From assembly GCA_047495785.1 (NCBI GenBank), contig JBLDXI010000033.1, forward strand, positions 2,170,001 to 2,234,000: a stretch of 64,000 bases of DNA, written 5' to 3'. How positions within the stretch are numbered: position 1 is the stretch's first letter; every line of letters starts with the position of its first letter. The stretch is from Lepidodermella squamata. Lineage: Eukaryota; Animalia; Gastrotricha. The notes beneath the pieces are model-generated. The model was given only the letters and a program-made list of their open reading frames with translations, was not told the origin of the DNA and ran no database searches. Shown here in pieces: positions 8,967 through 47,180 of the stretch. The position numbers and the translations under genes were made by a program.

Positions 8967-10415
8967 TCATTCACGGCTTAATTTGAGAGCTTGGCTGACA
9001 ACTTGATAGAATATCGGACTCATCTCTTGAAATTTCTGTGAAAACACAGCGAAAGAAATTATTCAAAGCTCTTGTTTCTTATATGGTTATTACCTTTAAA
9101 ATAGCTTCTTCCGAGATGTCGACGACAAGTCTGGTATACGTGCGCTCGGCGATTTCGACAAATCTATCGTAGACAATACTGTTGAGCCCGTCCAGCTTGA
9201 ACCTTTCTTGAGATGTCGTTAGGAGATGAATGCTGAAATAATTGAGTAGTGCACTCATTGGGGCATAAATAATGCGCATAAATCATACTTGGGAATTTTC
9301 GGGTAAGGCGAATGTGGCAAATTGCGGTAATGAGACAGCATCTCGTGCTCTCGATATATCGTCAAGTTGGCAAGCTTAGCTCTAAAAACAGAAAATAAAA
9401 TAAAACGAATTTTGTTCATATACTTATTGAATTTACCGTTTGAGGAATTCATCGTCTTGGTTACCTGAACCGAAGAATAGGTTGGAAAACCCGTTCATTT
9501 TCAGCATGTCTGGCGTGTTAACTGCTAAGACTCCTCCAAAGTAACCATCTCGGAAAGGCCTATTTTAACGAATGAAATGATTAATTTTATTTTATAAGAT
9601 AAATTTGACATACATGCGCTCGAAACGGTCTTGATATGCTGCCATATGACGAATAAAACCAGGCCTCGGACAGGTATGTGAACAGCGATCATCCACGGGG
9701 ATTTTATCGACATCGTAAAATAGAAAGCAATCGTAGTTGTAGTTCTTCATCGCGTGCTGGAAGCCAATATTCGACAGGATTCCGCGATTGAAAGGCGTTG
9801 TAGTCGAACCGCCTTGTTCGACGACGAAAATTGAGTAGTCAAGGAGTTGCCGCTGCATGATCATGTGTAGATAGTAGAGAAAAACTCGCAAGTTCTCGTC
9901 CCCATCACGAGTTGGGACAATGATGGCAACTCGGTTAATAGGCTCGCACCACCGAGGCTTGAAATGGCCGCCGTATTTCTCCTGGAAAGACTCTCCGTAA
10001 ATTTCTGTGATTTCGTCAAACTCTGGGGTATGAGCTGGCGGGTAAGGTAATTTCCCAGCTAAAATAAATAAAAAAATCACAGAAATATTCGACTGATTTT
10101 TGGCAAACCTAAATCTGGTGGATATCTTGGGCATTCTAGCATATACTCAGTATCGGAAGTGTTCCATCTGCTATTTGTTATGTTGGCGTAGTAATTGAGC
10201 AAGGTATCTCCGAGACTTTGTCCGCACGGCGTCACCTCGGTGAAGCTGACGATGTAAAATGATGCTAGGACGGCCCCAGCGCACATTGATAGAAAAGCTA
10301 GTAGGGCCCCGCCATACTTCCCTGACGGGTGGTAAATTCCCCATGGCTGATGAATGCCGAGAGCTGATGTGGATACCCACTGATATCCACCGCGGATAAT
10401 ATTCGAAAAACCCAT
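8967..10415 (-). CDS. Beta-1,4-galactosyltransferase-like protein (GT7 family), type II membrane, 6 exons
   Basis: N-terminal TM; GGHFKP, VAIIVP, FNRG, DVD motif, YFGGV, NGFSN, DGLNS; introns 10059-10108, 9560-9613, 9382-9436 and two more; stop TGA at 8969-8967. Confidence 0.9.
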
Positions 10416-12327: not shown

Positions 12328-13577
12328 AAAATTGAGAAAATTTAAAAAAACTACTCGATTTTTTCATTAATAATGTTCGCGATAAATAAAACATGGCGAA
12401 TTAAGGACTCATCGCGGACTTTTGTGTCAAATACTGATATTATGTCTATGGTCAAATATTGTGGCCAGTTTTTCGCTAAAATCAAATTTGGATCTCAAGG
12501 AACTAGCCAGAACGTTGCATAACGCGAGGTACCGAAATAAAAAATTTGATAAGTGCGCTCGTTGTTCGGTTCAAAAAACCCCGAAATTGTAAATCTTTAA
12601 TTTTTGGTAGTGGTGAATTGTTTTTGTTACCGGTTCTCACACTGAATCAGAAGCGAGAGGAAATTCACGCATCGAAAAAGAGGGTATCAAAAGAGAGAAA
12701 TCGAAAAATTTAAACGAAATGCGGCTGTTCTACGTTCTACAGCAAAATTTGCCAAATTCAACATCATTAACGCAGCAGTTCATGAGCGCACATTATTTGA
12801 ACCCTCAGAAATTCGCGATGCGTATGATATGTTTTAGAGCGGTATGGGGTATAAAATTACCTAGACGCCGTCAAGAACACCGGCTACGGCGTGATTGTCT
12901 ACTGGGAACATGAGGTTAAACAGCTGGAAAGGTGATCCGGCTTTTCCAGCTTTCGCCGTAAATTGGCGAAGTAATCGCGACGACTCAGTGACTCCGCCCT
13001 GTAGGTAATGAAAAAAACATTATAAACTGTTATTGAAATATTATGTAAAGGGAGGGTGGAAGTATTTGGGCATAATATGGGCGCCTGTATCATCAGGGTT
13101 ATGGTACAGCTGCGAGCAAAAGGAATATCGCAAAAAAAATTTGAATTACTCACCTAACGATGTGTGTTCATTCGATAAGATGAAGCAGCTGTTGACCCAT
13201 CACTTCATGAGGTGGAGATATTACCAGTTCCGCAAACTACCATGACCACCAGTAGCGCAGGTGTTAAGGTAGTTGAAGACTTGAAGTGTGTATGCATTAC
13301 GCTAAATAAGCCGCGCTTAACGCAAGCGACTTGTCGAAGTTGGAGCCCCGCTAGCTCTCTCTTTCTCTTTCTCTCCCATCTTTGTACATACCACTAGTAC
13401 GCAGCTCAGTGTCTAATCGTCGTCGTCTTCGTCATAAAAACATATCTAACTGAATATTATAAAGTCATAACCCCGAACGTTCACCCTTCCATCTCGGCGT
13501 GGCTGCGCTCAGCGCTCGTGCATGAATATTTGTCTAATTTGTGATTTTTATAATTGCGTATTTCTAATATCTAAAAT

Positions 13578-15364: not shown

Positions 15365-15470
15365 AGAGGGCGTGGCTTCATCGGAATATTCATCACTTGC
15401 TCATTCGCAATTTGCATCTAGCAATCTAAAGTATTTTCAGTTTTTCGCATTCTTCAAATCTTCAAATAAA

Positions 15471-16865
15471 ATGGCCTGCTCATACACCTCGATGCCCTCG
15501 ACCTTCGGCGCCGCCGCCGGCTACACCAGCCCGATCAACGTTGAGAACATGCTCCGCAACAAGGTCGACCTCTACTCGGCCCTGCCAGTCGAGCGCAGCC
15601 TCATAAATGCCAGCCCGATCGTCGGCAACACCTTCGCCTCGGCCGCTCCCTTCGGCGGTGCCTTCGAGACCGAACAGGCCCTCCGCTTCGGTGGTGCTGG
15701 CTCCGTCGTCGAGTTCGGTGCCCACACCGGCCGCGTCTTCGGTGCCGACTGCGGTGCCCAACTCGCCTCGATCGTCGCCGCCCGCCTCAACACCTTCCTC
15801 GGCCAGGAGGTGGCCGTCCGCATCGGCGCCCAGTGGGGAGCTGAGGTGTGCGCCAAGCTGGGTGCCGAGCTCGCCGTCAAGCTCGCCAACGGCTGGCCCG
15901 TCGAGCAGTGCGCCCGCTGGTGCTACACCTTCGGTGCCGAGCACGGCGCTGAACTGGGTGCCGTCATCGCCCAGCGCCTGGGTGCCATCTACACCGCCGA
16001 GCACGCCGCCCGCGTCTCGTCGATGCTCTTCGCCGAGCTGAGCCAGCAGCTGTGCTACGTCATCGCCGCCCGCCTCGGCGAGTCCCGCTTCGGCCGTTTC
16101 AACAACTGGACCGGCTCGTACCCGACCACCTACGGCTCGTACGCTGGCAGCTACGGCTACCCGACCTCCTTCGAGCGCTTCGGTGGCCTGTTCGGCGGTC
16201 GCCCTGAGCTCTTCAACACCACCAACACCTTCGGCTCATACCCGACCACCTTCGGCTCCTTCGGTGCCAACACCTGGGCCAACACCATGTCTGGCGACAA
16301 CAAGCTGTACAACATCGCCTTCCGCCCATCCTCGGAGCTCGAGATGTACACCCTGACCAACCCGATCCGCATGATCGACGTCGAGGGCAACCGCCAGCTG
16401 TACCTCGCCTTCGAGCTCAAGGGCTTCAAGCCTGAGGAAGTCACCGTCACCCTGAACAAGGCCGAGCGCGCCGTCGTCGTCGAAGCCGCCCACGACATCA
16501 AGGAGGGCAAGGAGCACCAGATCTCCCGCAAGTACTCGCGCAAGTTCGTCCTGCCCGAGGTGAGTAAATCATTGAACCTTCAGTCATCACCTATTTAAAT
16601 GTTAATTTCATTTTTCTAGACCCTTGCCAAGATCGACCTGACCAAGGTTGAGCTCAAGTCGTGCCTGACCCAGGAGGGCTACCTCGTCGTCGAGTGCCAG
16701 CTGCCGAAGATGACCACCGAGGAGATCGCCAAGTCGCCGATCATGTCCGAGCTGTACAACAAGATGCCCTTCGGCGGCTACAACGCCGTCCACAACTTCG
16801 GTGGCATGCCCTCGATCAGCAGCCACTACAACAACGTCAAGCCCGTCACCGTCAAGACTGCCTAA
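15471..16865 (+). CDS. Large small heat-shock protein (HSP20/alpha-crystallin), 444 aa; exons 15471-16559 and 16620-16865
   Basis: FELKGFKPEEVTVTL...VVVEAAH...ISRKYSRKFVLPE|...LKSCLTQEGYLVVE is an alpha-crystallin domain; extreme C-ending codon bias; AATAAA near 17018. Confidence 0.9.
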
Positions 16866-24321: not shown

Positions 24322-24914
24322 ACTGATAGCTAAAAAGCCGTGAACTCGACAAGTAACAACACTTTATTGGTCGAATGTTTGTCCGCATCGTTTTATACAA
24401 GATAGTTGAGGATGTTAAATAAAAGCGAGAGAGAATAACCGAGAATAAGACAAGAGAAACTGTATGTTTTCGCCGTTAAAAGCGGCAGAGAATGATGGCT
24501 TCACAAAAAAACCTAGCGAATCAACTCATTTTTTCCTGCAATTTTTCGTCGCGGCGAGACACGTATTGCTTATAGCATACTGAATGACATCATAAACACA
24601 TTACACCAGAAAAGTCTCTTTGAGAGAGAGCGTCACATCATTGCGCAAAACACCTAGTAATAGATATATATAACGACAGACACAGCGCCCGAAATTTTAA
24701 AAGCTGGGCAAGTTTCAACAACAATGATTTTGTTTCAGCGGTCGGTTATTTCCCTGAAAATGAAGATGAGCAGACCATAGTATTATCATCGGTTGGCATG
24801 TTGCTCTATTGTCGGCATGCATTTTGTACGGTAATGCTGGTAAAAACTGAAAAATAAATGTTATTGAAAAAATGTTTAAGGTAGAATTTTCGAACTCACA
24901 TTTTCTAACAGGCT

Positions 24915-27900
24915 CTATTTAGATGATGCGTCATTCGACGCTTCTGAGCCTTCGTCTTTCGTGGCGAGATTCAGGGGTCCAGTACTGCCCGAGCTGGCTT
25001 TCCGCGATGACGTCGATGACGAGCTTGCCGATGCCGGTTTAGTGACCGGTTTCGATAGATCCAACACGTCGTCAGCCTCAGCCGCCGCCGACGATTGGGC
25101 GGATGGCGGGCGTGGCGGGGGTGGAGCTGGGGCGGCTTGTTTCGGAGGTTTCGGAGCCGGGTTGGACGACGAGGCAGAAGACGGTGGGCGAGGTTTCGGA
25201 GGCGCTGGTGGTTCTGAAGCCGCGCCGCTGCCAGCTATAGCGGCCTGAAGCAGTTGCTCGGCTAGACCAGGCGGTAATCCGCCCAAGCCCCGAAGACCCT
25301 CGGCTAACGACGCAGCCGCTAGTTGCTGCTGAGCTTGCTGGGCCATTTGCTGCTGGGCCAACTGCTGTTGCAGCAGCATAGACGCAAGCATCAACGGATC
25401 GCCGAACATCATCGCCGATGGGTTGCCGAACAATTGGGAGAGCGTTTCGGCCGAAATACCAGGCGGCAGACCGGGCAGCCCACCTAACCCTCCCAGACCA
25501 GGTATAGCTGAGCCCAGTAAAGCAGCGGCCTGCAGCTGAGCGGCTGCTTGTTGTTGCGCCTGCTGCTGGGCGGCAGCGGCAGCCATCGCCGCGGCTTGCG
25601 CATTCGATGAGGCCTTGCTGCTACTACTGCCCGGATCTTTCTTCGACGAGGACGAAGCACCGCCGTGATGCTCTTTGTGTGGTTTTTCAGGTCGCTCTGA
25701 CTTTTCGTGTTTATCTTGTTTATCATGTTTATCATGCTTCTCGTGTTTCTCGTGCTTTTCGTGCTTTTCAGCCGATAGATCTTTCAACTCATGAGATGAA
25801 GATGAAGGCTTCATAGCACTGGTATCGACAATTCGAGGTTTTCGAGGTGGTTTCGGAACTTCTTTCGGAGCTTCTTTCGGGGTGGTCGATAGAGACCGCT
25901 CGGGTATACTTGACGAGGAGCTTTCGTCAACAGGCGGCGGAGGCGGTTTCTCGGTCGATTTCCGTTTTTTAGCCTCAGCTTTCGGCGGTTTTTCATCGCT
26001 GGGCTCAGGTGCCCCGGGTAACGACTGGGCGGCTTCGTCGGCCGGAGGCGGGGTAGCGGCCCTCGGTTCCTTCTTCGGATTTTTCGGCGGCCGGCCCTTT
26101 CTGCCGGGCACTTTCGCCGGGGTCGGTTTCGGGGTTGGTTCGGCGTCGAGCGAAGAATCATTACCGCCAAGACCGGACTGGTCAGCCTGGTGGGAGGTGT
26201 CCCGATCAGAGGCACCCGGGTTCGTCTCGTCATCCTCGGCCACGACCACCTTTTTCCGTTTTTTCGACGAAGACGTCGGGGCAGGGGGTTGCTTCCGCTT
26301 CTTCGGCGTTTTCTTCTCCCTCTTCGCAGATGACTCCGGGTCGTCTTCCGCCCCATTCGTAGCCCCATCACCCTCGCCGCCTTCCTCAGCGTTATCACCG
26401 CCCTCCTCGTCATCGCCAGTTGCGGATAACTTGGAATTTTCGTCATCGTCCTCGGCGCCTTCGCCCGATTTCGACTTTTTGCCCTTCTTCGGCGTTGCAT
26501 CCTGCGCTTTCCTCTTGCCCCGGCCGCGGCCAGATGGCGCCGCCGCAGCCTCTGCCTCTTCCTCCTCGTCCAAAATGTCGTTCAGCCACTGCTCGTCGCT
26601 CATAGAATCGATCGCATAATCAACCTGTTTCCGCTCACGAGCACCGCGACCACGCAATTGCTCCTCCAACTCTTGCTCCTCAACCACACGCTGCAAGTCC
26701 TCCTCGTCTCGCAACAGCCAGGCAGGCAATTCATTTTCTTGAATTAAACGCGACTTCCAACCGGACTGCATGTGCTCGCGGTTGATGCGTTCCATATCGA
26801 TTTTCTCGAAAATTTCCGCCTCATCCTCACTACGAGCCATCATTTCATTGATGGCCTTGTCGTCGGGGACCTCGAGATCTTCCTCCTCCTCCATATCGTC
26901 CTGTTGCAGCAGGAGTTGTAGAAAACGCTTCCGCTCGTTTGAGGTGGATTTCTGGTCAAACATGCCGGCTTGAATGACCTTTTCGTCGACGTTCAATTTG
27001 AAGCGCGCCGCGGCTAAAATTCGCTCTTCGACCGAATTCACGGTCATCAAACGCAAGACACGCACTTCATTGCGCTGGCCGATACGATGCGCACGATCTT
27101 GCGCCTGCAAATCTTGGTGCGGGTTCCAGTCAGAGTCGAAAATGATGACGGTGTCGGCAGATTGCAAATTCAAACCAAGACCGCCAGCTCGGGTCGATAG
27201 GATGAAGATGAAGTACTCCGCATTCGGGTCCTGAAATTGCTTCAGCAAGTCGCCTCGCTCCTCGGCCTTCGTAGTACCATCCAGGCGAAGGTACTTGTAA
27301 CCACGCCAATTGAAATAGTCCTCCAAAATCGACAAGGCAGAAGTCATCTATAAAATTAAAATTAAATTTTAATCGAAATTTTAGGAAAAATTTTGTTACC
27401 TGAGAGAAAAGCAAAACTCGATGTCCGGTTGCTCTGAGTTTTGGCAGGATACGATCGAGGAGTTCGAACTTGCCGGCAGCTCGGTACAGATCCGGCCCGG
27501 TAATCGACGTGTTCGGTTCTAGACCGATGTGCGCGGCGTAGGCCTGTTCGTAGTGGGGGAACATGAACGGGTGATTGCACACCTTTCGCAGCTGCATCAG
27601 CGTGTTCATTAGGGTGCGAGCGCCCTTCTTGTCCTTATCAGACACGTCCGTCAACATGATACCCTTCTGCATGTGGCGGTAGATGGCACGCTGCAGGCCG
27701 GACATTTCCACCTTAATGACATACTCGACCTTGTCGGGGAGTTGAGATTCGACCTCCTTTTTAAGGCGGCGGAGAAGGAAAGGACGAAGCACCTTGTGTA
27801 GACGTCGAATGATCAAAAGCGATTCTTCGCTGTTCAACTCGACTTTTTCGGTCGTGTTGGCGAATGGCGCGTTGAACCACTGTTCGAACGTAGTGCAAGA

Positions 27901-30016
27901 CTTAAAAATGTTGGGTAACATGAAATTGAGCAGCGCCCACAATTCGGGCAGTTTATTTTGCAGCGGCGTGCCGGTCAGCAGCAGACGATGCGGCGCCGTA
28001 TAGTACGTGTTCAAAATGATAGTCAGTTTGCAGTGGTGGTTCTTCATGCGGTGACCTTCGTCGATAATCAGGTACTTCCACTTGATTTTCGACAAAACGG
28101 CCTTGTCCTTGATGATGTACTCGTAGGTTGTTAGCAACACATTGAATCGCGCTGTTTTAATCTGAGAGGCAAGATTTCGACGCGATTGAGGAGAACCTTA
28201 AAAAAATGATAATTTAAGGAGGATTATATAAAAAAAATTTAATTTCACCTTTGTAGGTAATCACAGTAAGGCTTGGAACCCATTTTTCAAACTCATATTG
28301 CCAATTGGAAATTGTAGAAAGCGGTACGATGATCAAATGCGGCCCGTTCGACTTCTTCTTATCGGCCAAGTGAGCAATTAGACCGATAGTTTGGATAGTC
28401 TTGCCAAGACCCATCTCATCGGCCAGAATACCGTTCAAATTGTTGTTGAACAGCGAAACCAGCCATTCGATACCTTTGAGCTGGTACTTTTTCAACTCGC
28501 CGTTCACCATGTTCGACGGCTGCTTGTCAACCGGCTCGATAACGGAGTGGGCGATAGCGTAGTAATTATTGAATCCAGCTCCTCGTTTGTAGTCATCGTC
28601 TTCCTCAAGCCTGGCCTGCTCGATAATAGCTTTAGTTTGCTCGTCCTCGGGCAAATCAGAGGAGGTGCCCGCTGGTTTGGCGGAGGCTGCACTTATAGGC
28701 CGATCTTGGTTGTTCGTATTGTTGGTTTCGTCATCGCTCTCCTCGTCTCGAGGCTCAACTTCGAAGCCCTGGTGCATTTCGAGCCAAGTCTCGAGTTGCG
28801 ATTCAAGCGGCGCGTCTTTCCCGCTCAATCGCTCGCCCGTCTCCGGGTTGTGAACAGTGACTCGTCGCTCGCCATCTTCCGTGACCAGGTCCAATTTCTC
28901 GCGACGCCGTTTCGCCTTGTCAGAATCGATTTTCTTCTGAGTATCCACTTTATGCTGTTTGACCAGGTTGACCAAGTTTAAAATAAACTCATCGGTTTGT
29001 TTCAGCAAGAACGCAAGACGCTTGTCCTTCTTCTCGTCAATCATCTTACGATAACCGACTTCATCCTCAGCCATCAAACGGTTGATACGCTCCTTCTCGT
29101 TACGCTCGGCCTGTTTCTTCGCCTCGCGCTCGGTGTTGGCATGCCAGGCTAGAACGCTCTTGCCGACCTTGTTCAACGTAGCCCGAATGCCCTTGTGGTA
29201 CTCCTTGAACTCTTTGCCGTGTTGAATGACAGCGTTGATGTACTCGAGATGCTTTTGGCGTTTCTTCCGTTCCATCTCAATCTTCTGTTGCCGCTCCAGC
29301 TTCTCGGTAATTCGCGCCTCTCGCAACGTTTGCCGCTTCGGACGGCGGTAGTCTTTCATATTGAGCATCGTCTGAAGGGTGTTATCGCGCCGCATGAAGC
29401 CGAGAACTTCATTGCGAAGTGATCGCTGGAAATCAACGAGGCGCAGGGCCTTCAAAGTGATCGTCGCTTTGACTCGTAGGTCATCGCTACAGTTCAACGG
29501 CGTGGTTTCCAACTCACGAATGTGGTAAGACATGCGTTGCGCAACCCGGTTCTCGCGTTCGATCAACAACTGGATCGGGTCAACTCCGGGAGGTTTGGCG
29601 GCCGCGGCGGTTTTGCCAGGTCTCTGCTGCATTTGCAACATGGTCTGAACAGAAATTTGCGGCTGAGCCGGGACTACGGCGGTCTGTGGGGGTGGTCCGG
29701 CTGGAGCAGGGCTTGGCCCAGTCGACGCCAGTAAACCAGCTACCGTTGTGGTCTGGCCGGTCGTACTGAGAGACGCCCGGGTTCGGTCGACAGCAACGGC
29801 TAGAAATCCGTCGGGAACGGCCTGATTTCGCGACAACAGTCGGTAAGTGTTAATCTGAGCTCGCAGCTGAGCCATTTGGGCTTCCGAGAAAAGCCGCATA
29901 GCCGCGGCGTTACCACCAGGTGGTGGCGCCGGTCCGGGCGGGCGTTGGCCATAACCAGGCTCCATTTGAGAATTAGCCGACGGCTGGAGGTACGAAACAC
30001 TGCCAGCGCCGTCCAT
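24915..30016 (-). CDS. SMARCA4: SWI/SNF ATPase Brahma/SMARCA2-4 paralog B without bromodomain; introns 28197-28248 and 27348-27399
   Basis: QLQ ([12 protein letters not shown]), HSA, BRK ([12 protein letters not shown]...WLEMH), [13 protein letters not shown], HELICc ([11 protein letters not shown]), SnAC; long low-complexity tail. Symbol denotes the SMARCA2/4 family, not a specific vertebrate ortholog. Confidence 0.95.
25700..25770 (-). repeat. 9-nt tandem repeat encoding (K-H-E/D)n
   Basis: [23 protein letters not shown] in ORF 24915-27347. Confidence 0.8.
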
Positions 30017-30180
30017 TCAGATTTATAAAAAGCCTAAAATAAATGAAACACAAGTTAAACACCTTTAAAAATTCAATAATGAAAAAGACACCAGAGTTGA
30101 GGCTATCATCAAGCGAAAGAGTTGAAAGTAAAAATATATTCGTGTACAATAGAGCTGGATTATTATTATAATATTCGATA

Positions 30181-33100
30181 TCAGCCCTGAAATGATTGAG
30201 AATCTTCATAACCGACGATTTCTTCATATTCAACCGCATATCCACCGTACAAATCATCAGTCTCGTCTTGTTCTTGGTAAGGATCCTGATCCTGGTCTTG
30301 GTCCTGGTCTTGTTCAGACTCTTCCTCCTCCTCGGCGTAAGAGGTTGTCGATTCATTGTAACCGTAGCCGGACTGCTGGGAGTGATCGTCTTGCTCAAAA
30401 TTGCTAGTAGTAGGCTCTTCGATGTAGGCAGAACTCACGCCAGGTTCTTCAACTTTTTCCCGCTTTTTCCGCGGCTTTTTCGGTTTCTTAGGCTCACCAG
30501 GTTGGCCCGAAGCAGGTCGCTTCTTCCGACGACCGGTGTCCTCATCAAGCACTTCCCGCATCCATTGCTCTTCGGTTTGAGAGTCTTTACCATAGTCGAC
30601 TTGCTTACGTTCTCTTGCTCCTAAACAGAAAATCCAGCTTAATAATAGGAGGAACATTATTATTTAAAAAACTGACCTCGGCCGTAATAAAGGTCTTCAA
30701 GTTCTTTTTCCTCAGTAATACGACGGAGATCTTCTTCGTTTTTCAAAAGCCATTTCGGTAGTTCAGTTTCTTGGATGAGTCGCGACCGAAGACCAATCGC
30801 TTGGTCCCTCGCTTCACGCTCCATGTCCATTTTCTCGAAGAATTCCGCCTCATCTTCGCCACGAGCCATCATTTCATTTATCGCCTTATCATCAGGTACT
30901 TCAAGGTCTTCCTCCTCTTCCAAATCATCTTGCTGAAGAAGCAGTTGCAAAAAGCGTTTTCGTTCATTTGAGGTAGACTTTTGATCGAATTTTCCGGCCT
31001 GGATGACCTTTTCGTCGACGCTCAGCTTGAAACGAGCCGCGGCTAAAATACGCTCCTCGACCGAATTAGCGGTAACTAATCTCAGGACACGAACTTCGCT
31101 TTTCTGGCCAATACGATGAGCACGATCTTGCGCCTGCAGATCCTGATGAGGATTCCAGTCGGAGTCGAAGATAATGACAGTATCAGCGGATTGCAAATTC
31201 AACCCTAAACCTCCAGCTCGGGTCGACAGGATGAAAATGAAATAATCAGAGCCTGGCGCTTGAAATTTTCGCAGCAATTCGCCGCGGTCATCAGATTTTG
31301 TCGAGCCGTCAAGACGCAAATACTTGTACTGCTTCAACTGGAAATAGTCTTCCAAAATCGTCAAAGCAGACGTCATTTGCGAAAACATCAAGATTCGATG
31401 CCCTGTCGCTTTCAACTTCGGGAGAATGCGATCGAGAAGTTCGAACTTTCCGGAAGCTCTGAACAAATCGTTGCCAGTGATATGGGACTCCTTTGCCAGA
31501 CCGATATGGTCAGCGTAAGCGCGTTCAATTTGAGGGAACATGAACGGGTGATTGCAAATTTTTCGCAATTGCATCAATGTATTCATCAAAGTTTTGGTGC
31601 CACTGCCCTTTTCGGCCTTATCAGTATCGTTCGTCAACATAAAACCTTTCTGCATGTGGCCGTAGACAACACGCTGTAGACCGGACATTTCCACCTTAAT
31701 AACGTATTCAACTTTATCGGGAAGTTGCGATTCGACCTCCTTTTTAAGGCGGCGCAGAAGGAAAGGTCTCAGGACCTTGTGAAGTCGTCGAATGATCAAA
31801 ATCGACTCTTCGCTGTTTAATTCCACCTTTTCGCCCGTATTCGCGAAAGGAGCGTTGAACCACTGTTCGAATGTCGAGCATGACTTGAAAATATTCGGTA
31901 GCATGAAATTCAACAAAGCCCACAATTCCGGCAGCTTATTCTGAAGGGGTGTACCAGTTAGAAGCAGGCGATGAGGGGCTGAGTAGTACGTATTCAACAC
32001 CACTGTCAATTTGCAGTGATGATTCTTCATTCGATGACCCTCGTCAATTATCAAGTACTTCCATTTCGTCTTCGAAAGGATAGATTTGTCTTTTATGATG
32101 TACTCATAAGTGGTCAACAAAACATTGAAGCGGCCGGTTTTGATCTGATTGGCCAGGTTTTTACGATGCTGGGGCGAACCTTTGTACGTAATTACAGTCA
32201 AATTCGGCACCCATTTCTCGAACTCGTATTGCCAATTGGAGATCGTGGCGAGAGGCACAACAATAACATGAGGCCCGGTCGTTTTCTTCTTATCAGCCAG
32301 ATACGCGATCAAGCCAATTGTTTGAATTGTTTTACCGAGACCCATTTCGTCGGCCAAAATGCCGTTCAAATTGTTATTGTACAACGAAACGAGCCATTCG
32401 ATGCCTTTGAGCTGGTACTCCTTAAGCTCACCGTTAATCATATTCGACGGCTGCTTTGTGACAGGCTCCACAACTGAATGAGCGATGGCGTAGTAGTTTC
32501 CGCTGTCAGTACTGTTTCGTTGATATTCATCATCCTCTTCAGTCTTCGCCTTTTCGATAATCGCCTTGGCCTGATCGTCATCGGTCGGCTCAAGAGCCCG
32601 GTCAGTTTCACCGTCTTCATCACGAGGAGCGACCTCAAAACCTGAAGAAATGCAACATATAAAAAATGAAGAAAAATCCACCTTAACTAATTACCTGGAT
32701 GCATTTCTAGCCAGGATTCGAGCTGAGATTCTAGTGGAGCATCTTTTTGACTGATTCTTTCGCCCGTGACTGGATTGTGCAAAACAATTCTCCGCTCGCC
32801 GCCATCTTGATCAGCTTGCATGCGCCGTCTTTCACGTTCCTCCCGATCCAAAACAAGCCGCCTCTCAGCAGCATCTTCTTTGTGTTGCTTCACCAAATTG
32901 ACCAAATTTAAAATGAACTCATCAGTTTGCTTGAGAAGGAACGCCAGACGCTTGTCTTTTTTCTCATCAATCATCATTCGGTAGCCGGCTTCATCCTCGG
33001 CCATCAGGCGCTGGAGTCGCTCCCTTTCTATTTTCTCCTGCTGGCGTTTGAACTCCCTTTCGTTGTTCAAATGCCACGTCAAAACAGCTTTTCCTATCTT

Positions 33101-33880
33101 TGAGGTAGTCTGGTGAGCGGTTTTGTGAAACTCCCTGAATTCTTTCGCATGCTGAAGAACCGATGCGAGATACTCCGCGTTTTTCTGCTTCTTTTCTCGC
33201 TCCATAATCAATTTTTGCTGCCGTTGTTGCCTGAATAATTTCTGCTGCCGCTTCGATAAATTCGCAATATTAACATTGCTGTCACTGGGCTCGTTGAGCT
33301 TTTGCTTAATTATCGACGCAACGTCAGTTCTGACTGATTTCTGAAATTGCGACAATCGAAGAGCTCGCAGCGTGATTTGCGCTTTTAGCTTCGAGTCTTC
33401 ATCAGGTAAAAACTGCTGGTATTTGTCGACTTCCCGCGCGTGAAGAGCCATGCGAGTCGCGAGGCGGACATTTCTCTCCAAGACAACATGGGCTCGGTCG
33501 ATGGGTTGGGGTGGCACGGCCGGGGCAAGTTTACTTTGCCTGGCACTTTGGCGTTGGACTTGAATCGCTAACGACGGAGTTTCGACCGGGCTCGACCAGT
33601 CAGGCCGCGGGTCGAAAGTGAAGGACAGACTAGTTTTCTGGCATACTTTGCCTCGATTTAGCGCAACGGACAACAATCCTTCGGGAATGGTCAGTTTTTG
33701 AATAAACGCCCGATAGGCGTAGATTTGAGCCCTCAGTTGAGAAAACTGAGCCCCGGTAAAACGAACGGGTTCAGTCGGCGGATCGTAGGACGGGCATGAG
33801 CTCGAACGGTCGTACAGAGGAACCGGCTCTTCTTTGGTTTCGGAAAGTAGAGAACCCAAGAGGTCCTCATTTTCCAACAT
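30181..33880 (-). CDS. SMARCA4: SWI/SNF ATPase Brahma/SMARCA2-4 paralog A without bromodomain; introns 32642-32694 and 30621-30676
   Basis: QLQ, HSA, BRK, SNF2_N, HELICc and SnAC as in paralog B; ends in a short acidic Tyr-rich tail with a QD repeat. Family-level symbol. Confidence 0.95.
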
Positions 33881-34120: not shown

Positions 34121-35780
34121 TTAGTTGGAGCCCTGAGCACCATGGGTCAAAATGGTTGCAGCAGCGAAATTTCGCTGGACAACAGTGGCAGAGACACGGC
34201 TCGCCTCGGCAGCGGTGTGGCCGAGCTGCGAGGCTAGCAACAACGCTGGCAGCTGGTTGGTGGTCTGAGGCTGGCGAATGTTATGAGCAATTTCTTCCTC
34301 GGTAATCGGCACAGTCGGCTCGCCACGAGACGCCTTGCTGCGGTTCTCAGCCTCGCGGCGGGAAACGTATTGCTGGCGCATCTGCAGATAGCGCGCTTGC
34401 TGCACGCAGTTCTGAACCGAGCGACCAGCGTCAACGGCCAACTCTTCGGCACACAGCGCCAAATCACGCAGGTGGCGTTGCAGGGCAACGGTAGTTTGTT
34501 GTTGGCTGCAAAGACAAAGTAACCCATCTTAATTTCATCCTTCAAACCCCCGACTTTTTCGTAATTTGAGACACATCATTATGCTTATGCAATAAAGCGC
34601 AACCCTCAAAAACGCAATAAAATTGTGAAAATCCAATAAAACGCGTCAAGTACCTAGTAAGATTTTCCTTCTTCGCCGTTTTGAGTGCCTGGCACGAGCT
34701 TCGGACGTTGAAAGCGCCGAACTGATGCAACAGAATGTTCGAAAGATCCGAGTTGCGGACAGTAACCGGGAGCTGCTCGAAAATGTTCTCGAAGGTCAGG
34801 CCGTGCTGGCGCATCGTCTGCGGCGTGAAGACGTTGTTGTCGTAGAGCGCAACAGCGGCGTCGCTGAGGCGGTACGCACGAACCAGGCACGGCGGGGTGG
34901 TGAAAGCAGCGAGAACGTTCGACGGGTTCGCCTTCACCTTCGCCAGGTTATTCAGATCAATGACGAGTACGACGCTCTCGTCGTGCTGTTGCTGGTAGCC
35001 GAACTGGTGCTCGACGAACGCTTTCGTGGCGAAATTCGCAACGGAAGCGGTCGTGTACCAGCCGACAGCGACGTGGTCCTGGCGGAACATGCGCATCGTC
35101 GACAGCATGTCCATTTGATACCTGAAATTTTCATTTTTTTCAATCATGTCAGCAAATTTAACATCATAACATCTCGTAATTGAACAATTCATTTCATTAC
35201 GGTCCCCAGCTCTGCATCGAGTATATTAATGACTTTTGTGGAATAGCAGTCGAGCATACATAGTATGCAAATATTTAACAACAGATTTTCGCTTGCAACT
35301 AAACTAAACTAAAGGTACTGATGTTCAGGGTCGTTTTAATCTACCTCGCTAGAATATAGTACATTTTACACCCACTGAATAAAGATAACCTCATTATCTA
35401 GGGTGGATTGACAACAATTAGGCCAGTTTTATAACCTAGACATTTACATCAAGAAATTTACATATTGAATTTCGTGAATCATCTTTCATATCATTTCAAC
35501 GGCCTTACTTGTTTTCAATGTGTTCACGACGAGTCGCATCTTCAATGTGGTCAAGCGATGGAGACGAGAAGCAATTCGTCACCTCGAGGGTCGATCCAAC
35601 CAGTAGACCGACCAGCTTGCCCTCCGCACGCTGGTTCGTCTCTTCGGCGCTGCCGGATAGAAGAGACTCGGCGTGACGCAGCATTTTCATGAGGGTTACG
35701 CCCTCGAGTTGCACGGCTTCCGGTTTGGCGATCATGTGAACTGAGCCGCGATGCTGGCCTACAGGTTGCGCTTGCCTCAT
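34121..35780 (-). CDS. EIF3H: Translation initiation factor 3 subunit H (MPN domain), 3 exons
   Basis: VQLEGVTLMKMLRH, GKLVGL...LEVTNCF, YQMDML...DHVAVGWY, IFEQLPVTVRNS and C-terminal ENRSKASRGEP match eIF3h; introns about 35122-35507 and 34506-34653. Confidence 0.88.
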
Positions 35781-36390
35781 TTTAAAAATTATAACGATAA
35801 CGAAATCTAAAAATATCAAGGGATTAAATTGTATTAACAACACGTAATGGGCTTTTATTGAAATAATCAACCGTAAATAATATAAATTTGGCGGTGTATG
35901 GAAAAAAATCAAGGGAAGAAAAATCGAAAAACCGCTGTTGATCAATATCGTTACGAAAGACGATATAAAAATAATGATAATAATAATAATCGATGACTGG
36001 TTGATTGGAAAACGCGGGATGATGGAGGTACAAAATCTTTGATTACAGACAGGATTCACAACAGATTGCCACTGATTTTGAAGAAGAATAATAATAATAA
36101 GCAAAATCATATTGCGTCTAAGGCACCGCGATATCAATCGATTGGAGACCTGAATGTGGAAAACTTCGTTGTAACTAAAACGGTCCATGCACCATAAAAA
36201 TTTGTTAACAAATGGCCGTAAAAGCCAAGGCATGTGATAGTTCACAGCTAATCATACAACCTTAACACATGTGTGAAGCAGCAATGAAATGGTAACAGTA
36301 ATTCCTAAACGTGCCATTTGTTCACAACCGATCATACTAACGCTAACATATCGTAGTCAATTTCAAGTTCTCAACCGATTTTGAATCGAT

Positions 36391-37860
36391 TTAAATGCCC
36401 ATTTCGGTAAGGGAAGCATCGAATGCGGCTAAGACGTAGTCAGCATCGTGTTGATTGATACACATTGGCGGCTTGAAGCGCAGCGTGTTTCCGAATAGTC
36501 CGGATTTGCCGACGAGAACGTACTTCTCACGTAGTTTCTCCATCAGAAGGGCGGATTTTTCGCCAGCTAATGGCGTCCTCTTGACGGGGTCTTCAACCAA
36601 CTCTATGGCCAGCATTAAACCAAGGCCGCGAACGTCACCGATGGACGGATGCTTCTTCTGCATTTCGGCGACCTTCTTCATGATGTAGGTACCCATTTTC
36701 TTCGAGTTGGCTTGCAATTTCTCCTCCTCGATAACATCAAGAACAGCGCTGCCTACAGCCGAAGCCATAGCATTTCCACCGAAGGTGTTGAAATGCAAAG
36801 CATGCGTTAAAGGCTGTGCAATTTCCTTGGTGGTAACAACAGCAGCAAGAGGGAAGCCATTGCCGATACCCTTCGCCATTGTTACAATATCGGGGACAAC
36901 GCCGTGCGTTTCCCAGCCCCAGAAAGCTTCACCAGTACGGCCAAAACCAGTTTGTACTTCATCAGCAATGCAAAGACCACCACGGGCACGGACAAGCTTA
37001 TAAACCTGTTGCAGATAACCCTTCGGGAATTGGACTGTGCCACCGGCGCCCTGGATAGATTCCGCAATAAACGCTGCCATTTTACTCTTGTAGCAGGTTG
37101 AGCGCAATAGATCCTCAACTTCGTGCACGTAAGCATCGCAAGCTTTACATTGACCGGCAGCACAATCGCATTCGCGATTAGCTTGCACGGGAGAGTTGCG
37201 GCAGTTCTTACCGCCCCACGGGCCCTTGTAGACGTCTGGGCAGATGGCGTGATGATGACCGCCTGGCATGGGGATATTATGGCGCCAAGTCTGCATAGCA
37301 GCCAATGGCATAGTGCTTGGTGAAATGCCGTGATATGCATTGCGAAGAGATACAACATCCTGGCTTCCAGTGTTCAAACGAGCCATCAGCAGTGCCAAAT
37401 CGTTGGCCTCAGAACCGCTGTTAACAAGATAGACGTATTTGAGAGGCTCCGGGAATTTACCAGCAAGTTTTTCAACATAAGTCAATACAGATTCATAATT
37501 GTAAATTGTGGATGTGTGCCACAACTTCTTAGCTTGACCTTCCAAAGCAGCAAGAACTTTAGGGTGACAATGTCCAACGCTGATAGTCACAATTCCGCCC
37601 AAAAAATCTACATATCGCTGGCCCTTCTCGTCAAACAAATACTGCATGTGACCCTGGGTAACAGTCAATGGTGATTTGTAGTAGTGGAAAATACCAGGAT
37701 TGAGATGCTTCTTTCGAATTTCAGTCAACTTATCGGCCGATGGTCCAGTGTACTTGGGCGGCTTATAATCACATGGTGGTAAATCAGCCTGAGTGAAACT
37801 AGACGAGCTGCGGATGCCACCCGCAGACCGAACTTGACGTAATAACTGGCTACGCATCAT
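36391..37860 (-). CDS. AGXT2: Alanine-glyoxylate aminotransferase 2, mitochondrial (class III PLP enzyme), intronless
   Basis: Arg/Ser-rich transit peptide, GHMQYLFD, GIVTISVGHCHP, CPDVYKGPWGG, IADEVQTGFGRTG, PLP lysine in MAKGIGNGFP. Confidence 0.95.
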   Translation of the reverse strand: MMRSQLLRQVRSAGGIRSSSSFTQADLPPCDYKPPKYTGPSADKLTEIRKKHLNPGIFHYYKSPLTVTQGHMQYLFDEKGQRYVDFLGGIVTISVGHCHPKVLAALEGQAKKLWHTSTIYNYESVLTYVEKLAGKFPEPLKYVYLVNSGSEANDLALLMARLNTGSQDVVSLRNAYHGISPSTMPLAAMQTWRHNIPMPGGHHHAICPDVYKGPWGGKNCRNSPVQANRECDCAAGQCKACDAYVHEVEDLLRSTCYKSKMAAFIAESIQGAGGTVQFPKGYLQQVYKLVRARGGLCIADEVQTGFGRTGEAFWGWETHGVVPDIVTMAKGIGNGFPLAAVVTTKEIAQPLTHALHFNTFGGNAMASAVGSAVLDVIEEEKLQANSKKMGTYIMKKVAEMQKKHPSIGDVRGLGLMLAIELVEDPVKRTPLAGEKSALLMEKLREKYVLVGKSGLFGNTLRFKPPMCINQHDADYVLAAFDASLTEMGI

Positions 37861-39012
37861 TTTCAATTAAAACTCAGCAAACTCAAGTACAACGAAGTAC
37901 TGACCTATGAAAGATAAAAGAGGGTAAAGGGGGTTGAGGGTTGAATTAGGGCAAGTGTTTGGTGGTTAGTGCGACAAAATTACTTCTTAGTATGATACAA
38001 ATCACACGCTATGATCAATCTTCTATCTTCTATACATTCATTCTTTCATAAAAACGCAACTGGCCCTCTTTCTCAGAGCTAAATAACAACACTGAGGGCT
38101 GAGGGATCATTAAAATTTCACATGCTGAAGCCAATAGATAACGTCAATTTATGAAAAAAAACGACAGGATTGCAATTGACAGAAGTATACCAAATGCCTA
38201 GCCGGTTATCCACAGGACACAAGAAAGAATTCAAAGTTCGAGCTCATTCTCCATTTCTCCATTATCTGACGAAAACTAAAGCGAGATAAGCAGCGAAAAA
38301 CTGTGAACGACTATTCAAGGTCATAAAATAAAAAGAAATAAAGGGTTTCTGTCAATAATTATTTTAAAATCTACGACTTAATTTTATAAAATGAAAAGAA
38401 AACGGAGAAAAATGTGTTATTAGCCGCAGTTGAAATTACTTTTTTAACCTTGACTTTAATTTGTGTAGCCATCTGTCCGCGGTTTTCAGTTTTTGAAGCC
38501 TCAAACAGGTTGAGGGCGCTGCCTTTCAGTGCTTTCCGTTGACAGTTGAAAGAGAGGGCAGGCGGCTTTAGTTGGTCGTAGCAGTAGCCTAATGTTTTGT
38601 ATTGAATTTTGCTGCAATTATTATTCCAGCAAGTAATTATAGTTGACGTTAGCACCTTGTGTTACTGAGCCGACCGTTTATTGGAGTATTTTATTCATTA
38701 GCCACCTTCACCGTTTTAGCTTCACAGTAATATGTGAAGAAAAACAATGGGCTAGCTTCCTGATGGACTTACTAAAAACTGTTGTTGGAGTATCGGAGAA
38801 CGCCTCCAGAGATGTATCGCATTTTTTACTAAGTATCGAATTGAAAGTTTAACGACATGCATGATGCATGTAATGCTGCATATATATCATTTGCCGAAAT
38901 ATTTTGTTCTTCTTAATAACCAACTAATTGCCTTCCTCTTCCATGTCCGAGTTTTTGCTCTGACTCAATTCCGTAACCCAAGTTTTTATTCGGCCACTTT
39001 TTAGGGGAAGTC

Positions 39013-42169: not shown

Positions 42170-44604
42170 TCAGGTTCTCAACTGGTAGTAGACAATACCC
42201 TGAAATAACATGGTCAATTAGTGAGAGATTCGTTGTTTTCAGAGTTTAAACTTACGTGAGGGCTAGGTTCGGGATTGACGCATTTGTTGGACTTGATGTA
42301 GCACTTGTTCTCGAACTGATCGAAGGCGAAACCGAGACACTTGGTCGTATGGATGCAGCGAAGAGCGCACTCGCCAAGGGGCGCCACTACCTGTTCGATG
42401 ACACTTCCACGGCAGTTGCCAGCTAGTGCGGTGTAGTACTCGAGCACCTTCTCCTTGGGCGGCTCGCCACTCGGACGGATCGCGTGGTGGTTTGCGCGGT
42501 TTTCACCGTACTGGCTCGCGGTGGAGACTAGCGATCGTCGCGCCATTAGCGAGGACTGGTCGTGGCCAAGGCTGTTGCGGGCGCGCAGTTTTTTCTGCTG
42601 CGCGTTGTGCATCTGCTGGAGGGCGGCGCCGAGGCTAGGCGAGGTTTTGTTTAAATTGTTTTGCAAAAAATCGTAAAAAGCAAACAATTTTTCAGACTTG
42701 GACGAAGGCGGCGTAGCATCGGCGCCATCATCGCTGCCGCCGTCACCCTGGGTCGCTGCTACGTTGTTCGAAGATCCGCTCGAAGACGGGGTTTTATCCA
42801 TCAAAGCGCCGATTTTCCGGTAATAGACCCATGCAGAGCTCGTGATGGGGGTGGAGCATGACTCAGCTCGCAGGTAGCACTCATGAGGAGAAGACACGTA
42901 CAGGTTCACTGAGAAGCCGGAGCAGTCAACACGGCGGTGGCACTTCCTCGCGCATTCGTAGACGTTCAGTTCGTAGACTTTGTTGTCCAACAATGGGCTC
43001 TGGCAATCGCCCTCAAGCCGTTCGTAGCCGTGGAGGACCTTGCGTTCTGAAGAACGAGATTCGCGGCTGTGACGAGGGTAACCGTTGTGGTGGTTGTGGC
43101 GCCTGTTACTATTCATCATGAATCGCTCCTCAGAAGACGTATAGCCTTTGTAGTGAGCAGGGCTCATAATTGGAGGCATCATTGGCATCGGCGCGGGAGG
43201 AGGTGCTCCGCCGCCGTAGGGTGACGAGCCACCTAGAGCTGCGAAGGGCGAACCACCTTGAGCAGCAGCGGCTGCTGCGGCGAGGATGCTAGGAGGGGCC
43301 CCAGCCATTCCGGCGAGCCCAGCTCCTCCCATCGCTCCCCCCATCATACCAGGTGGGCTATTGGCTCGACTAAGAATGAAGTTGAGCAGACTCAGAATGT
43401 CAGGCATGCCAGATGAACCGAAAACTGAAAAATATATAATTAAAATTATAAGAACTTTTATTGAATTATGAACCAACGTTTCTTGAAGACCTGCTTCTGT
43501 TGGCAGTGGCCGATGAAGCGGCAAATGTGGTGGTTCTGGTCGTAGGAAAACGCCTGGCAACCGGCATCGGCGAGGCAGTATTGCGCGCAAGTGAAAACAG
43601 TCGAAGTCTTGAAATGCTTGTCGCTATCGCAGATCTGATCGTAAGTCGACAGGTAGGCACGTAAAATCTCGGTATTCGGCTCGTCACTGATGCGAATTGG
43701 CGGCAAGTCGAATGGTTGAACGTCATAGCCGGATGGGGGCATGGGTGGGGGCGGATAAGGTGCGTGGACTTTGTGAGCCCTTGGTTGCTTTTCTGCGGAC
43801 AAGAAGATGTTTAATTGTAAATTTTAGGGAATTTGTTAAGCCTGAAAAACTCAAGACATACTGCGGCAAAAACCGAAGCGCGACGAGTAAGTCGGAAAGC
43901 GGCATTCAGTGTGTTGCAGGGTGCATGAAAATGGCTTCGCCTTGCCGTCGGCGTCCTTGTCCCAGCTGAAGCCGAGACATTCAGCATTCAGGTTGCATTG
44001 CGATGCGCAGCGCTCGCGGTTGAACGCCAGTGGGTTGCCGATGGGTGAGTCCGCACAGTAGCCGATGATTTCTTCGTAGCGAGGCGGGCAAGCGTCGCTC
44101 GGTGGGCGGGCATCTCCCGCCGACGATCTGTCATCGGCGCCATGCCAGCGCGATTTAGGGTGGGCGATGGATGATTGACTAGGCGATGGCCAGATGCCCT
44201 CTTCGTTGTGGTTAGAATTCGGTCCGGTCGGCATGGCGTCGAGCGGTGCGGAGGCGGAGGGTGGCGCAGCTACGTCATCGCTCGTCTGGATATTACTCTT
44301 GTCGCCTTGTTGTAATTGCTGCTGCTGATGATGAGCTGCCTCGAGCAGGCGCGACAGGTCCCGCTCGGCTTCCTCCGCGACTTTCACTTTAGTGAGGTCA
44401 TCACAAAATCCAGTTAGAGCAAAGCAAAAGAAATATCACAGACAGGAATCACAGGTAAAAGCAAAACAAAAAATAAATCAAATGTTAGTCGCGGTGAGCA
44501 AAATTTAATTAGCATCAAAGTTGCAACTCACTGTTGTACGGCTTAGCGCCTTTTAGGATGACTAGGCCTAGAACGACCAGGGGAATGAGGCTAAATCTAG
44601 CCAT
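42170..44604 (-). CDS. Secreted PAN/apple-repeat protein P1 (4 PAN-like domains), 5 exons
   Basis: Signal exon MARFSLIPLVVLGLVILKGAKPYN (44532-44604); repeats of G-x-C...C-A-x-x-C...C-x-G-F...C-x-L...C...YYRK; last exon GIVYYQLRT*. Missed as one gene by the ORF track. Confidence 0.85.
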
Positions 44605-45886
44605 GAAGATCGCTCAGAAAAATAAACTAACGCGAAAGTTCTCTATTCCCAACTTTTCGCCAAGTTGAAATCACGCTAAATGTCAGGTGGAATCCTTGTT
44701 GGCCCCGAAATTCGGCGCTATTTAAACGTGCCCTAGCAACCGGCCTCTCAGTAAATGGTGGTGATTTTAAGGCAGCGCAAATATGGACATCGCCTATGTG
44801 CGGTTGCAAAGTAGCGGTGGTTTGTTGTTTGCTTCGTTTTTGACGCGACCCGTTAAAAGGCGTTATTTCAGGCTAAAAATTTCCGTTGGTAAATATCGGC
44901 ACGGGCAAATTTTTAGCGGCCAATTTACGGCCCGAGCAGGACGAAGCAAAATTTAGCTGATATTTATTTAAATTTTTAGCCCACTGTTGATGGAATGCGT
45001 ACATGCGGTGGAGCCTGGCCGGGCAGGTGTTTGATCTAGCTGCTATTAGTCGACGCGTGTGTATGCTCGGCTTTTTATTCTGACTCGTAATTTTATTTGC
45101 GCAATTTTTAAAGATGGCAACTTTTGCCCGCTACCGACGCCCAAATAATGCGACATTTAGCGAACAAACAAGCGCTAGAAAAACCACGTCTTCAAAAACT
45201 ACCTGAGAAAAATTTGGTATATACATGCTTTAAGGTAGCTACAGTTTGTTTTTCCACAGAGTGCTCTAATAAAAAGATTCGTCCTCATGGAAACAGATCC
45301 TTCGTCTTCATAATAATATCAACATCGGTAACGATTTTTCTGCCTCTCCGTGACTACGGTACATTTTTCTTTTAATAACATATTTTCCCACTTTGCAGAT
45401 TTCTTTAACCTGAAAATAATTCGTCGAAGCACTCGTTAGATTTTAGAAAATAATTTTTTTTACTTATTTTCGGCTCAATATTAAAGGATCCGTACATTTT
45501 CCAAAAATAATGTCAGCCTCAAATGAATGTCAGGGTAAAGGTATTTCAATTTTAGGACCACCTGAATGCTTATCCGTGAGCCCGTAAACTTTGGTCGCTA
45601 GGTCGACCATTCGAAAATAATAAGAATGCCATGGTTTTTAAATTCGACAAAATTAGTTTACGGCTTCGCGAACACTCGTATCCGAACTTAGGCAACGCGA
45701 GGTCAAACGTGATCAACAACTACCAGGGAAACTCCAACTTCAAGCTTGCCTAATGCTAGAATCACTTCGACTGTTGGCATTGAGAAAAGTACTGGTCCCG
45801 TAAGAAACCTGATCGTTTGTGCTTTGACTCATCCATCTTATTTTCAAGCCGCTCCACCAGATCTGTCACGAAAAAATCGATTGATA

Positions 45887-46022
45887 CAGTGGAACCCCGA
45901 TTCCCGGTAGTTTTGCTTGTAATTGCCCTCTGCGGGTCGTTCCTAAGTCGTTCCTAAATATTTACATATCGCGATTTCCCGTCAGACGGGAAACCAGGTG
46001 ACGGGAAATCGGGGTTCCACTG
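45887..46022. mobile_element. TA-flanked MITE, pogo/Tigger-like
   Basis: TIRs CAGTGGAACCCCGATT / AATCGGGGTTCCACTG; TA at 45885-86 and 46023-24; 136 bp. Confidence 0.88.
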
Positions 46023-47180
46023 TATTTATGCTGATAATGAGGGAACGGTTTAAAAACAAATGCAAGCATTAATTCAGAGAACTATATTTCAGCCGTTCTC
46101 CAGATCTGTTATTGAAAAACCAATCATTAATTAGAGGCTACTCCATTAAGTAATTATAGCTAGCCCAAGGGGAAAGCGACAGCAATTCGTCCCCAGTTCA
46201 TTAACCTCGTAAAATTTTTGAGTTCAAGTTCAATAGGGAAATGTCAAAACTGTGGAAAACCAACAATATCATTACGAAGAATTTGCATAATTGTACAAAA
46301 TTTTTATTGTTTCTTTTTTTATCATTATCATTAATGTTTGTCGCCTCGGCGCTATAATGTTAGGAGGTGAGAAGATGAGCATGATGAGAAAATCGATCTG
46401 GCGAGAATACTGCGGATTCAGCATTGAGAACGACGCCCATTATTCCGGATATCGTCATTCTGATTGAGCACAAGAGTTGACTAAGAAGGTCTGCTCTTCT
46501 AATGGAAGAGCTTGTGATAACAACGCCCGATTTCTTCGATCTACCTTAATATCAACGACGATTATATTTACGTGAGAAATTATAGGTTAACTGCGCGTTT
46601 TTAAATCTAGGAGAAAACTGAAAACAACTCGAAATTCGAGTTATCAATTAATACTGAGTCGCAATTTTTTTGATCAAGGTAGCGCCAGGTGAGGTGACAG
46701 TATACAAGAACTAGTTAATAATAAAATTACATTGTAACAACAATACAAATACAAAAACGAGAAGAGAGAGAGAGACAGAGAAATAAAACAGAAATGCGAT
46801 CGAGACAAAGAAAGAAAATTTGTTTATAACACAAAGTAGTAAAAGAAGATAGTTTCTCTACTTTTTTCATCATCAAATCAGTCAATAATTTAAACGAGAG
46901 TGCAGATGATGGGGGATGACACATGGAGGCTGGAGATGAGCAACACAATTTTCTTCCTTCGCATTTAACAATCACAACAAACTAAATAATAGAATAATTT
47001 CCGCCAGCAATATCGCGTCGGTTTTTTTTCTGTTTTTATTCACTCGTTCACAACCGCAAAAAGGTGAGGAAATAGGGAGTCTCCATGTATTAGAGCTTCA
47101 AATGTATATCAACAAACAATCATACACAACCGGCATTTGTAAAAAGTGGCATGGCTTCGATGCTTTCAGCCGCCCTCTGC

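Follow-up and report, generated by a model that had tools for sequence, protein, structure and literature searches.

In animals, the Brahma/BRG1-type ATPases of SWI/SNF chromatin remodelers, including SMARCA2/SMARCA4, Drosophila Brm, and Caenorhabditis elegans SWSN-4, share the domain order QLQ-HSA-BRK-SNF2 ATPase-Helicase_C-SnAC and end in a bromodomain, with an AT-hook canonically just before it. Animal and fungal SWI/SNF motor subunits are customarily defined in part by this bromodomain, which in human SMARCA2/4 is also a drug target. Outside these groups, the SYD and MINU (CHR12/23) ATPases of plants and the Snf2 ATPase of Tetrahymena are bromodomain-less. Bromodomain proteins (BRD1/2/13) are described as subunits of the plant complexes in PMC8299063, and Ibd1 accompanies the Tetrahymena enzyme according to Saettone 2018, as cited in PMC13580576. 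The subject of this analysis is a tandem pair of Brahma genes, here called A and B, in a 64-kb stretch of the genome of the gastrotrich Lepidodermella squamata (GenBank assembly GCA_047495785.1, contig JBLDXI010000033.1, positions 2,170,001 to 2,234,000 of the forward strand), hereafter the window. By their domains and their position in trees, both genes encode members of the Snf2/Brahma subfamily by descent that lack this one hallmark domain. It is likely that A and B are functional SWI/SNF (BAF/PBAF-type) catalytic subunits, produced by a tandem duplication private to their lineage from an ancestor that was already without the bromodomain.

Compared with animal Brahma/BRG1 proteins, A and B retain the same order of domains, and B also has an AT-hook-like motif, but neither copy has the C-terminal bromodomain, the genes form a tandem pair, and A has a remodelled pre-HSA segment and no AT-hook. 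Over the C-lobe and SnAC, their identity to the Brahmas of molluscs, insects, chelicerates, fish, and hemichordates amounts to 62-69%, whereas those reach 76-83% among themselves. The pair resembles vertebrate BRM and BRG1, which the abstract of PMC12326009 presents as alternative catalytic subunits, in that two Snf2-subfamily ATPase paralogs have been kept in one lineage. The vertebrate duplication was, however, independent, and A and B differ from its products in being adjacent on one strand (165 nt apart), in having far more divergent ends, and in both being bromodomain-less. The best functional analogy is offered by the plant and ciliate enzymes, which likewise carry no bromodomain of their own. 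These are nevertheless of other descent: A and B possess the metazoan BRK and branch with animals, among Bilateria, so that the likeness to the plant and ciliate enzymes is one of function and not of ancestry. Any partner bromodomain subunit of A and B is hypothetical.

The pair occupies 33880-24915 on the minus strand, where 33880 is the ATG of A and 24915 the final base of the B stop codon, exactly the limits given in an earlier note drawn from the bare sequence. Both genes have three exons and lie head to tail. Gene A (33880-30181, minus strand) has a coding length of 3591 nt, or 1196 codons, and gene B (30016-24915, minus strand) one of 4998 nt, or 1665 codons; both spliced totals are multiples of three and contain no internal stops. 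The four introns, all GT..AG and 52-56 nt long, were placed by eye and by script, the exon models being derived from the sequence itself. The features of the pair are as follows.

33880-32695, minus strand: A exon 1, with the ATG at 33880, QLQ (about 33722-33739), the remodelled pre-HSA (33212-33310), HSA, and BRK (about 32753-32800)
32642-32694, minus strand: A intron 1, 53 nt, GT..AG, not present in the A gene of the related species described below
32641-30677, minus strand: A exon 2, with the complete ATPase (motif I 32328-32342, II 32034-32045, III 31938-31958, V 31194-31226, VI 31104-31136) and the initial part of SnAC
30621-30676, minus strand: A intron 2, 56 nt, interrupting SnAC
30620-30181, minus strand: A exon 3, with the end of SnAC, a basic patch (30508-30534), a short acidic Tyr-rich tail, and the stop codon (30183-30181)
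30017-30180, minus strand: spacer between A and B, 164 nt (165 nt if counted from the final base of the A stop codon to the B ATG), a candidate intercistronic region
30016-28249, minus strand: B exon 1, with the ATG at 30016, QLQ, a canonical pre-HSA, HSA, BRK (28826-28873), and the start of the ATPase (motif I 28397-28411)
28197-28248, minus strand: B intron 1, 52 nt
28196-27400, minus strand: B exon 2, with the remaining ATPase N-lobe and the start of the C-lobe
27348-27399, minus strand: B intron 2, 52 nt, not present in the B gene of the related species
27347-26583, minus strand: first 255 codons of B exon 3, with Helicase_C (motif V 27165-27197, VI 27075-27107) and SnAC
26582-24915, minus strand: B tail, 555 codons, mostly disordered, with the stop codon at 24917-24915

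Pfam recognises QLQ, HSA, BRK, SNF2-rel_dom, Helicase_C, and SnAC in both copies. QLQ (PF08880) scores 26.5 bits in A and 34.3 bits in B (cut-off 23.8), HSA (PF07529) 51.9 and 64.8 bits, and BRK (PF07533) 35.4 and 52.7 bits, respectively. The match to SNF2-rel_dom (PF00176) covers the whole domain in A (337 bits, E 1e-101) and spans an intron in B, where its two parts reach 103 and 205 bits (E 1.8e-29 and 1.3e-60); Helicase_C (PF00271) is matched in A and B, and helicase motifs I, II, III, V, and VI are legible in the translations of both. SnAC scores 56.8 bits in B. In A it is interrupted by an intron: one match takes in profile positions 9-54 with 26.7 bits and the other positions 53-72 with 21.1 bits, neither of them reaching the 27-bit cut-off by itself, and the unsplit A tail of the related species reaches 35.1 bits. 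The profiles and the translations thus agree on the QLQ-HSA-BRK-ATPase-SnAC series with intact motifs that the earlier note had read in each copy.

The absence of the bromodomain, the central claim of that note, was borne out by every search applied to it. No match to PF00439 was obtained in the six large open reading frames (ORFs) (Pfam, E<=0.01), and relaxing the threshold to E<=10 for the tails of the two genes and of their orthologs brought none to light. A hidden Markov model (HMM) of the Brahma-type bromodomain was made from 109 database matches, and it recovers 108 of 120 control proteins. Run against 3171 six-frame stop-free fragments of at least 20 aa from the window and from two contigs of the related species (L001 and L002), it returned a best E-value of 1.2, which is chance level, and no bromodomain gene was found with it anywhere in the 64 kb. 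In an AlphaFold2 (AF2) model of the B tail, the helices are long and stand singly, and no four-helix bundle is formed, the model itself being weak (predicted template modelling score 0.26). Nor, as had been stated, do the flanks leave space for another exon: the B ATG comes 165 nt after the A stop, and between the B stop and the end of the adjoining channel gene there are 593 nt with nothing but short junk ORFs, none above 77 aa and none bromodomain-like.

A second species carries the same pair. The closest database proteins (P0001 and P0002, 74% identity) are encoded on L001 and L002, two ENA metagenome contigs from two samples, and the gene order on L001 (1272-13008), an AGXT2-type aminotransferase followed by eIF3h, an A-like gene, and a B-like gene, is the order of the window. 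By tblastn, the A-like gene is the counterpart of A and the B-like gene that of B. The tail of the A ortholog is likewise short, acidic, and aromatic, and the B tail aligns with that of its ortholog up to the stop, so that both tail types and the bromodomain-less state recur in the relative. Introns have turned over between the two: both A introns and the second B intron of the window are missing in the relative, which has an A intron where the first intron of B sits and an extra intron in the B tail (L001 about 6222-6290, 9885-9940, and 12419-12507). Because intron positions differ, the window and the relative are independent genomes and not one assembly copied. Since this second species shows the same order and tail types in two independent metagenome assemblies, the absence of the bromodomain is real and old, and not an artefact of assembly or annotation.

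Comparison of the orthologs between window and relative indicates that both genes are under purifying selection. The proportion of nonsynonymous differences (pN) is 0.198 in A and 0.178 in B, against a proportion of synonymous differences (pS) of about 0.89, and pN lies far below pS in every exon of both genes; synonymous sites are saturated, and these values therefore give no reliable dN/dS ratio. The contrast between pN and pS nonetheless excludes neutral decay. The fastest part of A is its N-terminal exon (pN 0.296, about 1.7 times the 0.172 of B).

Two regions served for phylogenetic trees, the N-terminal one (650 columns) and the C-lobe with SnAC (260 columns), the tree of the latter being rooted on Capsaspora; these trees, like all later searches and alignments, did not include B exon 2. 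In each tree, A of the window with A of the relative and B of the window with B of the relative together form one clade, separate from every other sequence, with a Shimodaira-Hasegawa approximate likelihood-ratio test (SH-aLRT) value of 100. This clade falls among bilaterian Brahmas and is otherwise unplaced. From the clade topology in each tree it follows that the duplication was private to the lineage and preceded speciation; A and B are thus sister paralogs whose duplication predates the split of the two species, and the lineage concerned is probably Gastrotricha. Parsimony favours a single loss of the bromodomain, before the duplication.

Several points weigh against this history. The placing of the loss before the duplication is a matter of parsimony only. 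The stem leading to A and B is long, as the identities given above reflect, whereas the Brahma of a schistosomatid flatworm still reaches 69-73% with those other Brahmas over the C-lobe and SnAC. Such a stem is compatible with co-evolution after the loss of the domain and with divergence beside an unseen canonical copy, and redundant extra paralogs could produce the same pattern.

Among animals, the bromodomain-less state appears to be confined to this lineage within the sequences searched. Searches were run exon by exon, and in two word searches length windows shut out most full-length relatives, which is partly offset by an exhaustive search of 1.84 billion representatives. The latter, made with B exon 1, brought up no additional sequence belonging to the A/B clade; it ranked the B protein of the relative first (77%), followed by a full-length mollusc protein (52%). 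All other full-length animal matches carry the bromodomain, including those of Batillaria (mollusc, P0348), Trichobilharzia (flatworm, P0356), and the beetle Phaedon (P0357), in keeping with the statement of the earlier note that the domain is standard in animal Brahma/BRG1. A positive contrast is provided by a compact, crustacean-like Brahma gene with few introns on an ENA metagenome contig (L003 239-4957), in which a separate 105-aa exon encodes the bromodomain. The domain is truly absent from an amoebozoan (P0405) and a fern (P0485) protein, and every word-search match without PF00439, outside the A/B clade, is cut at the first bromodomain helix (P0004, P0032, P0054, P0072, and others). The Trichuris suis model KHJ43646.1 (P0354), considered as a bromodomain-less candidate, was rejected as uninformative: it is chimeric, being Brahma until the first bromodomain helix and unrelated Cys-rich sequence thereafter, and its Helicase_C is missing. 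In the flatworm Schistosoma mansoni, Smp_158050 is listed with a SMARCA2/4-type domain match in a BLAST table from PMC6881072, and the matched domain is presumably the bromodomain.

The two copies differ consistently at both ends. The pre-HSA of A has a deletion of 7 residues and divergent residues, a remodelling that the A copy of the relative shares, and the pre-HSA of B is canonical. BRK, still recognised in A of the window, is degraded beyond recognition in A of the relative. The last 75 residues of A are Tyr-rich and have a net charge of -25, and no AT-hook was found in this tail. In B, an AT-hook-like motif at 26070-26105, judged by eye and without a model, is basic with a GRP core and is kept in the relative. 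The B tail (555 residues) is composed of 82% disorder-promoting residues, and its AF2 model has a predicted local distance difference test (pLDDT) value below 50 in 348 of 561 residues. Islands within it are kept in the relative, namely RKPR-VDT (25821-25844), an Ala/Gln helix (25485-25544), a helical MM-GDPL-LAS block (25362-25412 and 25245-25286), and, near the C-terminus, VLDLSKP (25047-25070) and PLNL[A/S] (24963-24977; PLNLA in the window, PLNLS in the relative). The remodelled pre-HSA and short acidic tail of A and the long disordered tail of B, all proposed earlier, are accordingly established features of the copies. A match to Diphtheria_T in the B tail (22 bits, cut-off 27) was rejected as compositional, as it falls on an Ala/Gln-rich run, and a look-up of the B C-terminus in the ESM Atlas gave nothing above chance level. 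As a separate observation, VLDLSKP and PLNLA/PLNLS (in the relative, L001 about 12800-12960) recall the PxDLS/PLNLS motifs that ZEB and other repressors use to contact CtBP (PMC2749851), a resemblance that is offered as a lead only.

Published work on other systems indicates how such proteins could operate. The core of the complex holds the pre-HSA, and the HSA binds the actin-related protein (ARP) module (PMC7445562); attachment of the motor to the core and the actin/ARP module through these two regions is also described in PMC13580576, where bromodomains are presented as dispensable for complex assembly. According to PMC8299063, mutations in the bromodomain have weaker effects than those in the ATPase, plant BRD subunits act with the ATPase, and loss of the bromodomain is mild in flies and Arabidopsis unless BRD subunits acting in trans are also removed. 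The deletion alleles of Drosophila brm and Arabidopsis brm-3 (Elfring 1998 and Farrona 2007, cited in the same paper) are thus a precedent for an ATPase that works largely without its bromodomain, with the difference that those alleles were made in the laboratory, whereas the loss in A and B is natural, fixed, and common to two species. Since the anchor regions are kept, and since the bromodomain is dispensable for assembly and its loss mild, a bromodomain-less Brahma can still be a working SWI/SNF motor.

On this basis, a mechanism may be proposed. With their pre-HSA/HSA docking region, an ATPase of intact motifs, and SnAC, both A and B would enter a complex and move nucleosomes. B would be the conservative copy, with a canonical pre-HSA, a strong BRK, and the AT-hook-like motif, after which, in place of a bromodomain, a disordered tail of 400 residues would have been gained or kept, in which short motifs and a single helical block are conserved. 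A would be a faster-evolving, stripped copy with a remodelled pre-HSA, a weak BRK, no AT-hook, and an acidic tail, and it probably acts in a different sub-complex or is docked differently. The reading of acetyl-lysine might be supplied by other subunits (BRD7/BRD9/PBRM1-type), in the manner of plant BRD1/2/13, or replaced by contacts of the B tail with DNA or partners. Expression, division of labour, and the supply of a reader in trans are candidate elements of this scheme. The rewired BAF complex with two specialised ATPases envisaged in the earlier note is therefore upheld in part: two distinct, maintained paralogs with conserved N- and C-terminal differences are present, and the rewiring itself stays a proposal.

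A more far-reaching version, put forward tentatively, holds that A and B are the sole Snf2-subfamily ATPases of their lineage, forming remodelers without an acetyl-lysine reader on the motor. The neighbouring and perhaps co-transcribed paralogs would share out the work, with B as a BAF-like all-round enzyme whose AT-hook-like motif and motif-bearing disordered tail stand in for the bromodomain, and A as one re-docked through its altered pre-HSA. If true, this would, to our knowledge and within the searches run, extend to animals for the first time a condition described until now only elsewhere, in plants and ciliates. A rival explanation is that A and B are extra, derived paralogs and that a canonical bromodomain-bearing brm elsewhere in the genome performs the standard BAF/PBAF work, the core being unchanged. 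The unusually long stem would then reflect constraint relaxed by the retained canonical copy, which could lie beyond the single 64-kb window of the genome that was read, while a canonical copy of the relative might be hidden in the large animal cluster of a library clustered at 50% identity. Yet no bromodomain-bearing sequence stands beside the A/B clade in any tree, including those with ENA, Logan, and JGI matches; the nearest other metagenome matches (51% identity) group with crustaceans, and neither the word searches nor the exhaustive search shows a third close relative. Most invertebrates, moreover, have a single brm, and B keeps all canonical N-terminal features together with the AT-hook-like motif. 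A hidden canonical gene is regarded as rather unlikely.

It is very improbable that a bromodomain exists at the locus and was missed in a distant or tiny exon, at an assembly break, or through unusual splicing. The derivation of the exon models from sequence and the acceptor-like sites downstream of the B stop leave some space for such an exon, but the window contains no N, its six frames hold no bromodomain-like fragment of at least 20 aa over 64 kb, and the two independent assemblies of the relative have the same gene ends and none in about 20 kb. Furthermore, the last 170 residues of B match the last exon of its ortholog, and the A stop and the B ATG are 165 nt apart. Still less probable is that one or both copies are unexpressed relics becoming pseudogenes, an idea that the faster N-terminus of A and the degraded BRK of the relative's A might invite, but which sits poorly with uninterrupted frames of 1196 and 1665 codons, correct splice phases, intact helicase motifs, and pN far below pS in every exon despite saturated synonymous sites.

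The likely reading of A and B as working, bromodomain-less catalytic subunits would make this lineage a natural experiment on the role of the domain, on its compensation, and on the accompanying changes in the ATPase and its anchors. It also adds a clear gene-family case for a little-studied gastrotrich genome.

The surroundings of the pair on the window are the following.

24322-24914, no strand: non-coding stretch 3' of the B stop, reaching the end of a convergent ligand-gated channel gene
34121-36245, minus strand: eIF3h, several exons, upstream neighbour of A on the same strand
36391-37866, minus strand: AGXT2-type aminotransferase, upstream neighbour on the same strand, with 53-58% identity to proteins of many phyla, spiralians at the top

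These neighbours may share a transcript with the Brahma pair. The spacers measure about 240 nt between eIF3h and A and 165 nt between A and B, compared with 181 and 132 nt in the relative, where the order AGXT2-eIF3h-A-B has been kept despite saturated synonymous sites. A T-rich acceptor-like site ending in AG lies 18 nt before the B ATG, and a similar site is present in the relative. Same-strand spacers of about 100-250 nt and a conserved order are features by which spliced-leader operons of the nematode or tunicate type are recognised, and the locus shows both. Since a tight, conserved order is combined with acceptor-like sites before the B ATG in both species, co-transcription of AGXT2, eIF3h, A, and B as a candidate four-gene operon is suggested. 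The L. squamata genome paper (PMC11660948) contains none of the terms bromodomain, intron, operon, or trans-splicing; it gives a GC content of 43% for the genome, and that of the window is about 45%.

An Rfam scan of the window gave no match. Elsewhere in it, an ORF of 408 aa (15372-16598) has as its sole match a C-terminal Hsp20 domain. PAN/apple-domain proteins are encoded by several genes at 42214-49697 and 59300-61459, a Kunitz domain being present in one of these proteins, and a PAN-domain gene is also found downstream of Brahma B at the locus of the relative.

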